Positions 10,101-16,100 of a stretch of 64,000 nucleotides of DNA are shown here, piece by piece; position 1 is the stretch's first letter; the number at the start of each line of letters is the position of its first letter. The DNA comes from Malacoraja senta. Lineage: Eukaryota. The position numbers were made by a program, and so were the translations under genes. The stretch spans positions 72,168,001 through 72,232,000 of the forward strand of contig CM075981.1 in assembly GCA_038087875.1 (NCBI GenBank), read 5' to 3'. The notes beneath the pieces were generated by a model. That model saw only the letters and a list, made by a program, of their open reading frames with translations, ran no database searches and was not told the origin of the DNA.

Positions 10101-13100
10101 TTTGAGACGTGCTTTCAGATGTGGTGAAGATTGTGAACCACATCCGAGGTGGGCGCAACAAACTCAAGAATCTTCAAAGCGATGGATGAAGAAATGGGCG
10201 CCGATTTCACTGTTCTGATATTCCACACAGAGGTGTGCTGGCTTTACCGTGGTAAAGTTCTCAATCGTGTGATTTAACTTTGAGTGGAAATAGCACTGTT
10301 CTTGGAGAGAGGGTGTACCGAGAAGGTGAATCGGCTTCATGAAAAGATGCAGGATGAACTGTTCGTGATGAAGGTTGCTGACCAGGCTGACTTTTTTGCC
10401 GAGGTGAATTCCTTGAACCTGTCACTTCAAGGAAACCTCCCAATGCTACACACGGCTCATGACAAAGTGGCAGCATTCAGGAGGAAGATTCACCTTTACC
10501 AGAGAAGAGTCCAGGACGGTGACACGACTATCTTCCCTGAGATGATGACTCTCCTGGATGCTACGCCAGATGCTGAATGCCACTTCCACGAGGAGATCTC
10601 AACCCACCTTCTGGCTATTAGTGAAGCCATCGAACGTTACTTCCCCAGACTGGACGACCACTCTCGTGATGAGTGGATCGTCTGACCCTTTTCCGTTGAA
10701 GATGGTGCCATCAACGATACTGAACGTGACTGCGAAGGTTGAATTTTACCGAATTCGTGAAGATGTGCAGCTCAAGAGTGACTTAATGGAGCAAGAGCTC
10801 GCCACGTTTTGGATGAAAGTACAGGACTGTCCTGTTCTTTCGAAGAGGGCCCTGACATTATTAGTCCAGTCCCCCTCAACCTACCGCTGTGAGGCTGGAT
10901 TCTCAGCCATGGTAACTCTGAAAACGAAGGCACGCAATAGGCTTGTGATCGACGCTGACATGAGGAGCTGCCTGTCAAGCATTCGTCCTCGTTTTGATCG
11001 CCTGATGGTTGCGAAGCAATTTCAGCCCATTGACTGAGTATTGACGGATATGTTTTAATAAATCAGGCTTTAACTGACCAAGAATGTCTGTTAAGAACCA
11101 CTGCTGTAGAGGCTTTATGATGGAATAATTTTGGTTGACAGTGGGAGAGCTACTATTGGTAACTAGTCTGAATTGTTTTCATGACCTTCTCCATTTGATT
11201 TTGATCTGTGAGCGGCCAGTGCTGAGGTTTAGTTGACAAGCCTTCCAGGGCCAAGCTGAAATGAAGCTATTGAAAGGGTGAGGGGTTGACAGAGCAACCA
11301 GCAGTGTTTACATTTGTACTATTCCTATCATTACAAAACCTCTTTCTGGTCATTAAAGACTGATCAAACGTAGTCTCTTCAAATCCACGAATTCAGCCAT
11401 TCTGGTCTACCTACGCAGTCACAGGGAGAACGTGCAAACTCCGAACAGACAGCACCTGTAGTTAGGATCGAACCCAGATCTCTGGACCTGTAAGGAAGCA
11501 ACTCTACCGCTGTGCCACTGTTCTAGCCATCAGTTTCCAAATTCACTCCAAAACTGAGGTGCTAAATTTGGTCCCACTATGATTATTTATTGAGATGTGG
11601 GTCTCAACTGGTCAGTCAGGATACGATCTGCAAACGTTGGAATTTGCAGGAATCCAGTCTATCATTTTTCGGGCTAGGTTGGGACGAGGTGTAGATATGT
11701 GAAGCTGATGATTGACTATTATTTTGGTCTCCCTGTTTACAGGTCTCAGTGATCCTTTTGTCATCATCGAACTCGCTCCTCAACACATCTTCCAAGGAGC
11801 AAAGAGCCAGCGAACACAAGTCAAGAATAAAACACTGCACCCTATTTTTGACGAGCAGTTTACCTTGTTAGTATTTTTCTTCAGTTATCTAAATTACTGC
11901 ATCCTTTCTCTCATCATGCACTGGGTTGATAAAGTGCAGGTGAGATCAGGCGTAGGCTTGGCAATCGATTCGCCCAACACCTCCGCACGGTCCGCAATAA
12001 CCAACCTGATTTCCCGGTGGCTCAGCACTTCAACTCCCCCTCCCATTCCGAATCCGACCTTTCTGCCCTGGGCCTCCGCCATTGCCAGAGTGAGGCCCTG
12101 CGCAAATTGGAGAAACAGCACCTCATATTTCGCTTGGATAGTTTACACCCCAGCGATATCAACATTGACTTCTCCAATTTCAGGTAGTCCTTGCTTTCTC
12201 CCTCCTTCCCCTCCCCTTCCTAGCTCTCCAACAAGCCTACTGTCTTCGCCTCTTCCTTTCTTTTTCCCGCCCCCCCCCCCCCCCGACATCGGTCTGAAGA
12301 AGGGTCTCAACCTGAAACTTCGCCTATTCCTTCTCTCCATAGATGCTGCCTCACCCGCTGAGTTTCTCCAGCATTTTTGCCTCCCTTAAACTTCCTCCAA
12401 TGTCTCTCTCGGGACAGATACAAAACATATTACATACACAATAAGCTCCCTCTACACTGTCCCACCAAACACTCTTGGGTAAAGATAGACACAAAATGCT
12501 GGAGTAACTCAGCGGGTCAGGCAGCATCTCTGGAGAGAAGGAATGGGTGACATTTTGGGTCAAGCCTCTTCAGCAGGTCAGGCAGCACCTCTGGAGAGAA
12601 GGAATGGGCGACGAAGAAAGATTTCGACCCGAAACGTCACCCATACCTTCTCTCCAAAGATACTGCCTGCCCGCTGAGTTACTCCAACATTTTGTGTCTA
12701 TCTACCTATCTCTGATACCCATCTCAGACTTAGAGGGAAGGATTCTACTTTTCAATACTTACTACAGTGTGACTTTCTTTCAGCACGGTGTCGGAGAAGT
12801 GCAGCAACGACATAGCTTGTATTCACTTCACAGTCATGGACCATGACTGGCTTTCAACGAATGACTTTGCGGGAGAGGCTGTATTGTTGCTACAGGAGAT
12901 TCATGGGTTCCAGAAACCTGCCGTCGCCGGTGGAATCAAAAATGTCTCCCCGATATTTCTAAAACTGACACACCCTGACTCCACTGGTAAGATATTAAAG
13001 TTTGATCTACTCATATGTTGAAAAATACACTGTAGATCACTTCAAAGCATATAAGATTTACACACATCTTTATTCAGCACATTAACTTAGCAGCATTACA

Positions 13101-16100
13101 GGTTTAGGTGTTGTCAGTTCATCCTGGCTGCTTCAACTAACGGCGCTGGGAATGGGCGTTAGTATAATTGTTATAATGGGGCGGAGTTAGTGATGCCAAC
13201 TAAGTGTGATTGATTCACATGCATCCTCAATCTACATCCTTTCCCTTAAAGATTAAAAGCATATTAAACATACTCGCCATACCTGTCTGGTGGTCTACTA
13301 ACACGGCCCGAACGCGTGCGGACCCAACCATCCCCTCCCTCAACTGAAGGATGAGGCGGGGAGGTTGAAGGTGAAAACCGCACGGGAGAGGATTGTGGTG
13401 ACCGAGGGGGGAAACATGCGGTGGGTGAAACCCCGTGGTTATTGGAGACCGATAGACGTGGGGGAGTGGCAGGCATGTGGGGACGGGCGGGAGACATCGC
13501 GGAAGGTGGCTGGAACTGGAGCAGCGGAGCATATGGATCGGCAGGCGGCGGTCGGGGCTCCCTCACAGCAAGCAGGTGTTGACGACTTCTCCGGTAAACC
13601 GCTCCCTCACAGTCCACAAGGTACGATCGCGGCTCATCAGTCGGGCGCACAACAACGCCCAGACGAGAATGTCCTTGCCCTTTTTGTAGGTAATCGAGAA
13701 GTCGTACCGCTGCAGCTGCATCATCATGCGCTGCAAACGAGCTGGGGCGGCGTGGATAGGCTTGTTCAAGATTGTCACCAGTGGCTGGTGGTCCGTCTCA
13801 ACCATGAACGTGTTGCCAAAGACGAAGTCGTGGATCAAAGGAAACTTGCAGTTTGTGGACAGTTTTGTCAAAGGAAATCAGCCCTAGTTCCTGACAGGCA
13901 CGATTGCCAAGCAGGGTAACCGAATTAAAGTTCAGCACATGGAAAGTCAATTCCCTAGTTGTTTTCTTCAGTACACATTTCAAGTCGGCTTTGCCCAGAG
14001 GAAATAGCACCTCCCCGCCAAAAGCATGCAAAGTGGACGCATCCTGGACAAGTGGCTCGTTAGCCCTGATCCTGTTAAAAAGGTTGATTGACATTGTATT
14101 GACTCTGGCCCCCGTGTCAAGTTTCGCGCCAAATGCAACATTGTTTACAGATATCGTAACTGTAGGATCAGAGTTCTTGGCAGCAGCACCGGCAGAGTCT
14201 CCCGCCGACCCCAATGTTTTGCTGCGTAAACTGGCTCAGATCTGTGACCTGCCCTCAAATCACATTTTGGACAGGGCAAGGTTTTTCTCTCATCGTCAAC
14301 TTCCCGGGGAACGAGCGGATGCATATATTTCCTCTTTAATGTATCTAGCACAACGTTGTCGATTTCAGGAAATGCCTGCGGATCAGTTGACTGATCAGTT
14401 AACGAGGGATATTTTAGTGAATGGTATCACCGATCAAAAGCTCAGATCAGAGCTATTGAGACGGCCAGAGTTGTCGCTAAACGACGCAGTGCATGCGTGT
14501 AGAACGGCTGAACTTGTTGATCCTATAGACATTCCGCATGAAAGCAATACCATCAATCTGACGGGCCTCACTAGGCAGCGGACATACAGAGATAACAGCC
14601 GATCCAAGATCCAAGAGAAGCACGATACCCAGAAACGGTCATACGACAGTTCCAGCAGACCACTCCAGCCTCTACTGCCGGGCCAGGTCGTCCGTCTACG
14701 AACTCCAACTGGAGGCGTGGGTTCGAATCCCACTTCTGACACCATGTAGATCACTTCAAAGCATATAAGATTTACACACATCTTTATTCAGCACATTAAC
14801 TTAGCAGCATTACAGGTTTAGGTGTTGTCAGTTCATCCTGGCTGCTTCAACTAACGGTGCTGGGAATGGGCGTTAGTATAATTGTTATAATGGGGCGGAG
14901 TTAGTGATGCCAACTAAGTGTGATTGATTCACATGCATCCTCAATCTACATACACCAGTCAATGTTTTATTTTACAATGCACGTGTCCACATTCTGCATT
15001 GTTTCTTTTTCTCTCTTGCGTATCTACGTATAGTATGATTTGCCTGGACAGCACCTAAAGAGGATTTTGTAGGACGGAACTGCAGATGCTGGTTTATACC
15101 GAAGATAGACCGAAAATGCATTTCATCAGGACTCCATTTGCCTCGTTATGATGAGGGATGAATTAGAATGCAATCTGCAAAATCTAGAACTGAATTGTAT
15201 TAGGACTGAGGTTCACTTTAAAATTCCAGATTTCTCCTTCAATATCACCTCCCTTGATGGTACACAAAAATGCTGGAGAAACTCAGCGGGTGCAGCAGCA
15301 TCTATGGAGCGAAGGAAATAGGCAACGTTTCGGGCCGAAACCCTTCTTCAGCCCGAAACATTGCCTATTTCCTTCGCTCCATAGATGCTGCTGCACCCGC
15401 TGAGTTTCTCCAGCATTTTTGTGTACCTTCGATTTTCCAGCATCTGCAGTTCCGTCTTTATCACCTCCCTTGATAGCTGATTTAAAAAAAAAATCCAATA
15501 AGCACAATGAATATCAACAAATATTTTCTTCAGTTGATCATTTTCTTCAGAAAAATTGTTTGCAGGACCAGAATGTTGCGTGCAAGGATAGCATTTATTG
15601 CCCATTGTTACATGCCTTTTGAGAGGCTCTCATGAACTGCTTCTTAAAGTCTAAGAAGTAGTGAAGATAGTTGCTGTTGGACTGCAGTACCCAGATTTTT
15701 ACCCATTGCCAATGAACAGTTGATGATGTATTTTCAAGTCAGGATGATGAGGCATGGAGGACAATTTGCAGGTGGCAATATTCCAATTTGTTTGCTGCCT
15801 CTATCCCTCCAGGTGACTGTAGATCAGTTGATTGGGTGTGGTATGATGGTGGTAGAATTAATGTTCTAGGTGGTCCAATCAACATTTAACTTTAGTTTAG
15901 CTTATTGTTACGTGTACCGAGGTACAGTGTTTTTACAGATTTTTATGTTATGTGCTATCCTGATCAGCAGAAAACTATCCATAATTACAATCGAGCCGTT
16001 CACAATGTACAGACACAGGATAAAGAGAATAACGTATAGTGCAGGATAAAGTCCAATCAAAGATAGTCTGAGGCTCTCCGATGAGGTAGATGGTAGGTCT

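Follow-up and report, generated by a model that had tools for sequence, protein, structure and literature searches.

The window, by which we mean the whole 64-kb stretch of DNA that was analysed, carries a fish-type Ty3/gypsy element that is young and dead. The element is 1.9 kb in size with an interior of 1.5 kb, and its sense is that of the minus strand. The 5' LTR (14745-14950) and the 3' LTR (13031-13236), both on the minus strand, are direct repeats of 206 bp with TG..CA ends, and they are flanked by a 5-bp target-site duplication (TSD), TACAC, at 13026-13030 (left copy) and 14951-14955 (right copy), a length within the 4-6 bp range of Ty3/gypsy elements. The LTRs are identical at 205 of 206 positions, and the sole mismatch, C at 13144 versus T at 14858, is a CpG transition. 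The near identity of the LTRs, together with the intact TSD, indicates that the element was integrated as one unit, and recently. The polypurine tract (PPT) AAGGGAAAGGA (13237-13247, minus strand, written as the reverse complement of the top strand) adjoins the 3' LTR, and the PPT of the relative L001 occupies the equivalent place. The canonical 18-nt primer binding site (PBS; 14727-14744, minus strand) adjoins the 5' LTR and is complementary to positions 59-76 of tRNA-Leu(CAA). Coordinates and alignment thus bear out the original prediction of LTRs differing at one of 206 bases with TSD, PBS and PPT intact.

In element sense, the interior reads PBS, inverted integrase (IN) piece, inverted gag, sense protease, sense RNase H and sense IN tail; five non-parental junctions, J1 to J5, connect five parental segments. 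The inverted IN C-terminal piece is situated on the plus strand at 14610-14713, displays 92% identity to L001 and 91% to L002, and lies directly upstream of the IN tail in the relatives. It is followed by the gag piece (14189 to ~14609, plus strand), likewise inverted relative to the LTRs, which gave 1901 HMMER hits, has 82% amino acid identity to P0001 and corresponds to residues 56-165 of the intact polyprotein P0017. The sense protease piece (13835-14188, minus strand; from 13832 when J4 at 13832-13834 is included) contains an LDTGA motif, gives a weak Pfam aspartyl-protease match and is 82% identical in DNA to L002 and L004. The sense RNase H piece (13675-13831, minus strand; to 13834 when J4 is included) comprises ~53 codons ending in ..ITYKKGKD, matches PF17917 at 5.9e-6 and is 89% identical to L004. 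The sense IN C-terminal tail (13264-13668, minus strand; to 13674 when J5 is included) retains the natural stop codon at 13264-13266, and exhibits 80% DNA identity to L001 and 77% amino acid identity to P0129; it corresponds to P0017 residues 1173-1278. These domain and homology matches agree with the identities first proposed for the pieces, every one of which retains an open frame.

All pieces are colinear on P0017 and on the L002 element. The pol order protease (PR)-reverse transcriptase (RT)-RNase H (RH)-IN is present in both, whereas in the window copy it is scrambled, with RT and the IN core missing. Lacking RT and the IN core, with a partial and antisense gag that has lost its N-terminus, and with no leader, the window copy is non-autonomous and probably immobile. 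Two readings of individual segments were considered and rejected. The stretch GCAGCAGCA at 14180-14188 was taken as gag, but the protease-upstream region of L002, TGCTGCTGC, fits better, at 9 of 9 positions. A second parent was considered for the inverted IN piece on account of its 92% identity as against 78-80% for the tail to L001/L002; the difference reflects regional conservation, as a comparison of L001 with L002 shows as well.

Junctions and a shared breakpoint

The same-lineage relatives L002 (ENA ERZ25070917 ctg96439), L001 and L004 (both Logan SRR5172149) share 70-92% DNA identity with the window copy, their PBS is likewise of the tRNA-Leu(CAA) type, and L002 has the order gag-PR-RT-RH-IN. 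Wherever the window copy has a junction, L001 and L002 run through colinearly, and none of its junctions is shared by any of L001-L006. Set against parent proxies of 76-92% identity to the window copy, so that overlap lengths may shift by 1-2 bases, the junctions display overlaps of 4 nt (TGGA, within 14710-14713) at J1 between the tRNA stretch and the inverted IN piece, 0-1 nt at J3 between protease and inverted gag (14188|14189), 2-3 nt ((T)CC, 13832-13834, minus strand) at J4 between the protease end and the RNase H piece, where the whole RT is deleted, and 6 nt (GGACAT, 13669-13674, minus strand) at J5 between RNase H and the IN tail. At J2, between gag and the IN piece (14603-14616, plus strand), the 7-nt unit TCCAAGA occurs twice in tandem and the IN homology begins at the second copy.

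The join on GGACAT was confirmed with L002 and L004 as parent proxies, since the motif is present in both parental contexts: the RNase H regions of L002 and L004 read AAGGACATG and the IN of L002 reads CTGGACATT. An overlap of k or more bases is expected by chance at ~(k+1)/4^k, which gives 0.2% for GGACAT and 2% for TGGA. The proposal that the jumps were guided by microhomology stands for J5 and J1 and probably for J2, but fails for J3; at J4, with its 2-3 nt, the microhomology is not clear either.

Both IN pieces, the inverted one and the sense tail, are broken at one parental position, here termed B (TGGACAT), with breakpoints at most 7 nt apart. Sequence is contiguous across the two pieces in L001, L002, P0129, P0153, P0154 and P0017; the residues ..RTPTG / GHSRLG.. 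adjoin one another in five natural relatives at the protein level, and at the DNA level L001 is contiguous across B (609-711 versus 710-1204). The two pieces are thus adjacent parts of one parental ORF, as had been suspected from the window alone. Two independent breaks in ~4 kb would coincide within 7 nt with a chance of roughly 0.3%. RNA folding of L001, L002 and a 170-nt local join revealed no consistent hairpin around B that would explain a pause.

tRNA-derived sequence beside the primer binding site

The most diagnostic feature of the window copy is a read-through into the primer tRNA. Next to the PBS, positions 14710-14726 (minus strand) extend the tRNA complement by 17 nt past the normal m1A58 stop, through the T-arm and the 3' side of the variable arm. 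Over all its 35 nt (14710-14744), the stretch matches the 3' end of human tRNA-Leu-CAA-2-1 without a difference, and the match takes in the CCA, which is added after transcription. The intact PBS of the original prediction is indeed present at 18 nt, but the read-through was overlooked. In the relatives the contiguous tRNA-complementary bases number 18 (L004), 14 (L002) and 9 (L003), which argues that the 35 nt are not a family trait. The 35-nt stretch indicates that plus-strand strong-stop DNA went beyond m1A58.

The identification is based on the published human tRNA-Leu-CAA sequence and not on Rfam or ARAGORN, which recognised the T-arm alone and reported no tRNA gene at this stretch. A longer stretch of 42 nt, running via the variable arm (CTCC..TGGAG), was rejected, as the IN of both relatives reads ACTTCAACTGGA, one base from the window; this rejection depends on the sequence of the host's own tRNA-Leu gene, and if the variable loop of host tRNA-Leu(CAA) is ..CTCCAACTGGAG.., the overlap at J1 would be ~12 nt instead of 4. 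We also note that the sequence after the PBS in L002 bears a weak resemblance to the tRNA T-arm complement, and an ancestral extended PBS is conceivable.

Origin of the rearranged interior

The window copy is probably a dead-on-arrival, tRNA-Leu(CAA)-primed Ty3/gypsy cDNA, the interior of which was rearranged in reverse transcription before it was normally inserted by the element's integrase. A template-switch origin followed by normal integration, as initially put forward, is well supported by the LTRs, the TSD, the 17-nt tRNA extension, the coupled breakpoints and the segment order. In the pathway that we propose, minus-strand DNA after the first jump would have run through U3, the PPT and the IN tail as far as B, ~437 nt from the PPT. 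There it would have switched via GGACAT to the RNase H region (J5), with deletion of ~1.1 kb of IN, and then via (T)CC to the protease end (J4), with deletion of RT, before halting just upstream of the protease. Plus-strand strong-stop DNA would meanwhile have proceeded past m1A58, and with 35 nt of tRNA copied the normal PBS transfer would have been impossible. Its 3' end (..TCCA) may instead have annealed to UGGA at B, in a part of the genomic RNA left uncopied by the minus strand, and primed a second cDNA there in a manner resembling L1 twin priming. This second cDNA would have copied ~104 nt of IN backwards, switched at J2 to gag RNA and continued backwards for ~420 nt. Finally, the two cDNAs would have paired at their 3' ends (J3), each being finished on the other, to yield a linear molecule in which both LTRs are complete.

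The presence of antisense IN after the tRNA stretch implies a landing template of sense polarity, and a strong-stop landing through the 4-nt TGGA on such a template results in an inversion. We infer both the order of events and the template, which may have been an RNA remnant, a second genomic RNA or plus-strand DNA. A single aberrant cycle, as originally envisaged, holds only for J1 and J5, which are coupled through B; J2, J3 and J4 could predate that cycle in a defective source copy. The 7-nt tandem duplication of TCCAAGA at J2 is a feature that the proposed pathway does not explain.

A different history, in which RT errors scrambled an older master copy and the window copy is an ordinary retrotransposed member of an established non-autonomous family, mobilised normally in trans, is rather unlikely. 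The intact LTRs, 18-nt PBS and PPT make mobilisation in trans conceivable, but no second copy was found within the 64-kb window, and no junction-spanning protein was found in collections of 1.84 billion and 5.8 billion proteins, from which the host genome seemingly is missing. The 281-aa plus-strand ORF that crosses J3, J2 and J1 had zero matches in the 5.8-billion set, and a HMMER representative search returned no fusion of gag to the IN piece. Cluster look-ups of the relatives' proteins gave singletons throughout. Packaging signals usually reside in the leader between PBS and gag, and this leader is missing here. That the coding pieces are all still open speaks against a long independent non-coding evolution. 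The earlier suggestion that the element could seed a non-autonomous family is thus not sustained, with no second copy in the window or the searchable collections and the PBS-gag leader gone, and nothing supports an evolutionary consequence of the window copy.

Explanations outside reverse transcription fare worse. Inversions and deletions of an intact element after insertion, by end joining or replication template switching, are very improbable; short microhomologies are typical of MMEJ and FoSTeS too, but DNA repair offers no source for a 17-nt run of mature tRNA that adjoins the PBS and keeps the CCA register, and the segment order is unreachable by one or two inversions plus deletions. Moreover, five breaks would have to fall in 1.5 kb, with LTRs and TSD untouched, within the time of one CpG change. 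Given its orientation on the strand opposite to the remaining interior, the inverted block could be regarded as a nested insertion, a fragment of another element or family, an idea to which we attach next to no weight: the block itself joins two parental segments that are not neighbours, its IN part runs on exactly into the IN tail of the host element at B, which the contiguity in the relatives makes irreconcilable with nesting, and its identity to L001/L002 follows the regional pattern seen between L001 and L002. It has no termini or LTRs of its own, and an own TSD and a foreign family, the two signs of nesting named at the outset, were both looked for and neither was found. An assembly chimera is scarcely credible either, as a perfect TSD, matched LTRs, an in-register tRNA extension and coinciding breakpoints are not expected from misassembly, the window contains zero N runs, and L004, an independent contig from another dataset, has a structure of the same class.

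Known systems and a second inversion

Reverse-transcription errors have mostly been studied in cell culture or HIV reservoirs. The vertebrate germline insertion described here has recorded, in full and nearly unmutated, one failed replication cycle or several. The record includes copying of the primer tRNA beyond m1A58, a misdirected transfer of strong-stop DNA, and jumps at microhomologies by which RT and most of IN were deleted. The type of accident is already known, and the window copy alone leaves retroelement biology unchanged.

Its closest precedent is provided by defective proviruses of HIV-1 that carry tRNA inserts or inversions. Inserts of 7-54 nt of tRNA-Lys3 have been reported at rearrangement junctions of such proviruses and assigned to deferred second-strand transfer (Hardy et al. 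2025, PMC12657518). As in those proviruses, strong-stop DNA extends beyond m1A58, tRNA sequence past the 18-nt PBS (17 nt at 14710-14726, followed by J1) marks the junction, and the product is integrated with both LTRs. The reported HIV-1 products landed further along minus-strand DNA and carry a simple internal deletion. This is in contrast to the window copy, in which antisense IN follows the tRNA stretch, pointing to a sense-polarity template and an inversion; it is, furthermore, a tRNA-Leu(CAA)-primed Ty3/gypsy element of a vertebrate germline rather than a retrovirus. Internal inversions are found in ~1-3% of sequenced HIV-1 proviruses (for example PMC9278108), which are likewise integrated, often with large deletions, but reports such as this one give no junction anatomy, mechanism or tie to tRNA read-through or the PBS. 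With the window copy, tRNA read-through products, known from HIV-1, are seen in a Ty3/gypsy element as well, and here they are linked to inversion instead of deletion.

The geometry also works like L1 twin priming (see also PMC2912911), in that a single RNA is copied from two primers at separate sites, the inverted segment borders the direct one at adjacent positions of the RNA, and the joint between the cDNAs shows little or no microhomology. The similarity is confined to geometry: L1 employs target-primed reverse transcription at a chromosomal nick, whereas the second primer here would be strong-stop DNA in a particle, and the product has LTRs, PBS, PPT and an integrase-type 5-bp TSD. Twin priming as the source of L1 5' inversions was reportedly described by Ostertag and Kazazian in 2001. 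LARD/TRIM-type elements likewise retain LTRs, PBS and PPT and have lost coding capacity; they form multi-copy families, in contrast to the one known copy here, the interior of which is partly inverted, beyond mere deletion or replacement.

A different inversion of its own is present in L004, in which inverted PR-RT directly follows the 18-nt PBS, joined via a 6-nt ATCCCA overlap. The breakpoints upstream of the protease in L004 and the window copy lie ~7-9 nt apart. We tentatively consider that mis-priming of strong-stop DNA on uncopied genomic RNA might recur in this lineage as a source of PBS-adjacent inversions, perhaps with a preferred RT stop upstream of the protease, although we regard this as doubtful. 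In that case the two copies would be witnesses to a general but under-described birth route of rearranged non-autonomous LTR elements, which might also be behind retroviral proviral inversions. Together they furnish a concrete, testable model of how inverted segments arise beside the PBS.

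Structure of the scrambled element and its relatives

The window copy is a 1920-bp LTR element at 13031-14950, with the 5-bp duplication TACAC on both flanks. The LTRs are 206 bp each, have TG..CA ends and differ at a single position, a CpG transition (13144 C vs 14858 T). In the minus-strand reading, LTR 14950-14745 is directly followed by a tRNA-complementary primer binding site (PBS), and a purine run, AAGGGAAAGGA, is situated just ahead of LTR 13236-13031; neither is present in the plus-strand reading of the copy, and the element is therefore oriented on the minus strand. 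The 64-kb window contains no further copy of its LTR or interior.

The interior of 1508 bp begins, in element sense, with the PBS and extra tRNA sequence (14744-14710). An inverted integrase (IN) C-terminal piece (14713-14610) and an inverted gag piece (~14609-14189) are followed, again in element sense, by protease (14188-13835), an RNase H piece (13834-13675) and the IN tail (13674-13264), after which lies the polypurine tract (PPT). The Pfam match of the protease is weak and that of RNase H is above threshold. The plus-strand gag and IN reading had 1901 matches in a HMMER scan run over the full 1.84 billion representatives, with the gag part aligned near the N-terminus in every long gag-pol polyprotein matched. 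The IN part is 76-79% identical to two short proteins, P0054 and P0129. On P0017, an intact polyprotein of 1280 aa, gag maps to residues 56-165, protease to 270-363, RNase H to 760-800 and the IN tail to 1173-1278.

Related copies were taken from contigs encoding homologous proteins found in the search, and these natural relatives, 8-30% diverged, served as proxies in place of a rebuilt parent. L002 is colinear (LTR-PBS-gag-protease-RT-RNase H-IN-LTR) but decayed, its own LTRs being 83% identical. L001 covers the IN core, the tail and the PPT and reaches the beginning of an LTR; L003 starts at the end of an LTR and continues past the PBS into gag; L005 and L006, also colinear, are more distant. 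The gag and IN pieces of the window copy align with L002 plus to plus, whereas protease, RNase H, IN tail and both LTRs align plus to minus; the inversion is therefore real and of the same lineage. A further ORF with RVT_1 is located upstream on the same 12.5-kb contig (L002:1869-2294) and so the contig holds a second retroelement, unrelated or older.

Coupled breakpoints and primer tRNA sequence

Five non-parental junctions (J1-J5) were mapped. RNase H joins the IN tail at GGACAT (J5, 13669-13674), the RNase H context being AAGGACATG in L002 and L004 and the IN context CTGGACATT in L002. The overlap is (T)CC between protease and RNase H (J4, 13832-13834), 0-1 nt between inverted gag and protease (J3, 14188/14189) and TGGA between the IN piece and the tRNA sequence (J1, 14710-14713). 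At the gag/IN junction (J2, 14603-14616), TCCAAGA (GATCCAA in the other register) occurs twice in tandem and may reflect RT stutter at microhomology; the second copy is the start of IN homology, and the gag side has no close proxy.

The original prediction that the inverted and sense IN pieces were neighbors in the parent is confirmed by the relatives. The protein is uninterrupted across ..GQVV.L.T.TGHSRLG.V.. in five of them, and the inverted piece and sense tail correspond to 609-711 and 710-1204 of L001 DNA. By this contiguity, the inverted piece ends and the sense tail begins within the same 7 nt of the parent, TGGACAT (position B); the chance of two independent breaks coinciding this closely is ~0.3%.

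The 35-nt tRNA-like stretch adjoining the 5' LTR (window:14710-14744:+) is a clue overlooked by that prediction. It matches the 3'-terminal 35 nt of tRNA-Leu-CAA-2-1 without a mismatch, CCA included (sequence printed in PMC10359600). The stretch spans the acceptor 3' strand, the entire T-arm and the 3' side of the variable arm. Plus-strand strong-stop DNA usually ends at m1A58, which corresponds to 14726 and leaves an 18-nt PBS (14727-14744). Contiguous tRNA-complementary bases number 18 in L004, 14 in L002 and 9 in L003, so the extra 17 nt are not a family feature. To our knowledge, tRNA sequence reaches DNA solely via RT copying of the primer, and the extra 17 nt thus mark read-through of the stop. 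Read-through leaves the strong-stop 3' end non-complementary to the minus strand (PMC8599865; PMC12657518). After the 14-nt PBS of L002, the sequence ..ACTGGGATCCACTCCTTC.. (6589-6625) bears a loose likeness to the tRNA T-arm complement, which could be chance or a remnant of extra tRNA complementarity.

L004 (contig Logan SRR5172149_49415, 1-1391), retrieved via a protease homologue, is also scrambled. In its own sense it comprises a 5' LTR, an exact 18-nt tRNA-Leu PBS, inverted protease-to-RT (L002 8054 to 7429) and sense RNase H-IN (L002 8792 to 9405), with ATCCCA at the PBS/RT junction common to the tRNA end and RT coding sequence. It has no junction in common with the window copy and thus records a distinct event of the same kind. 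The protease-side breakpoints of the two copies are ~7-9 nt apart; with ~10 breakpoint pairs compared, chance alone would bring two within 9 nt in roughly 5% of cases, which suggests a possible hot spot.

Proposed route and alternatives

In the most likely route, the minus strand would copy from the 3' end as far as B, ~437 nt past the PPT, switch via GGACAT to RNase H and then via (T)CC to the protease end, and halt just upstream of protease. Strong-stop DNA, requiring 206 + 35 nt of synthesis, would finish at about the same time, and the tRNA read-through it carries would prevent the PBS transfer. The strong-stop 3' end (..TCCA) could instead anneal to UGGA at B, on RNA bypassed or only just being reached by the minus strand, and from there prime a second cDNA. 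In one variant, RNase H trimming would have left the bypassed RNA ending at B; in the other, strong-stop DNA annealed at B would have stood in the way of the minus strand and made it jump. Under both, J1 and J5 would have a coordinate in common. This second cDNA would extend over ~104 nt of IN and then, following a further switch, ~420 nt of gag. Pairing of the 3' ends of the two cDNAs, each completed on the other, would yield two full LTRs, as in normal synthesis, and integration would then produce the 5-bp duplication.

Chromosomal rearrangement after integration offers no source for tRNA sequence that runs in register with the PBS. This rival also demands five breaks inside 1.5 kb that left the LTRs and target duplication intact, and a single inversion or a pair of them could not produce the segment order. 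The inverted block lacks termini and a target duplication, and at B its sequence is continued by the IN of the element itself, which excludes a nested insertion. The coherence of target duplication, LTRs, PBS and tRNA register makes an assembly artefact unlikely. The serious rival concerns timing: an earlier master copy could have been scrambled and later mobilised in trans. No second copy or junction-spanning ORF was found in the 64-kb window or in the protein collections, which apparently do not include the host genome. The missing leader, together with coding pieces that are still open, mildly favours a one-off event over a master copy.

The closest described products come from HIV-1: 44 sequences of defective proviruses in which tRNA-Lys3 inserts of 7-54 nt lie at deletion junctions (PMC12657518). 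In those, landing on minus-strand DNA leads to deletion, whereas read-through in the window copy is tied to inversion. HIV-1 proviral inversions are recorded at ~1-3% (PMC9278108), and the literature examined gives no mechanism for them. Template switching is commonly held to produce non-autonomous LTR elements (PMC13477061). L1 twin priming resembles the proposed route in geometry but differs in enzymes and primers. What the window copy adds is a gypsy element from a vertebrate germline that ties tRNA read-through to inversion, preserved in enough detail for its path to be reconstructed.

Genomic surroundings

An ORF resembling an exon (12788-12986, +), with a weak match to the C2 domain, ends at a GT donor (..ACTG/GTAAGA, ~12986/12987). 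The window copy, whose flanking duplication begins at 13026, lies in the next intron, ~40 bp from its start and in antisense orientation to that gene, and its inverted gag-IN reading frame is thus on the gene's strand. Several ORFs at 9621-11037 (+) resemble hAT-type transposase remnants, with a weak Dimer_Tnp_hAT match at 10558-11034. SINE-like repeats form inverted pairs on either side of the element (12289-12703 and 15254-15430), among them a near-perfect palindrome at 15256-15430, with 84-nt arms that are 96% complementary and a 7-nt spacer.
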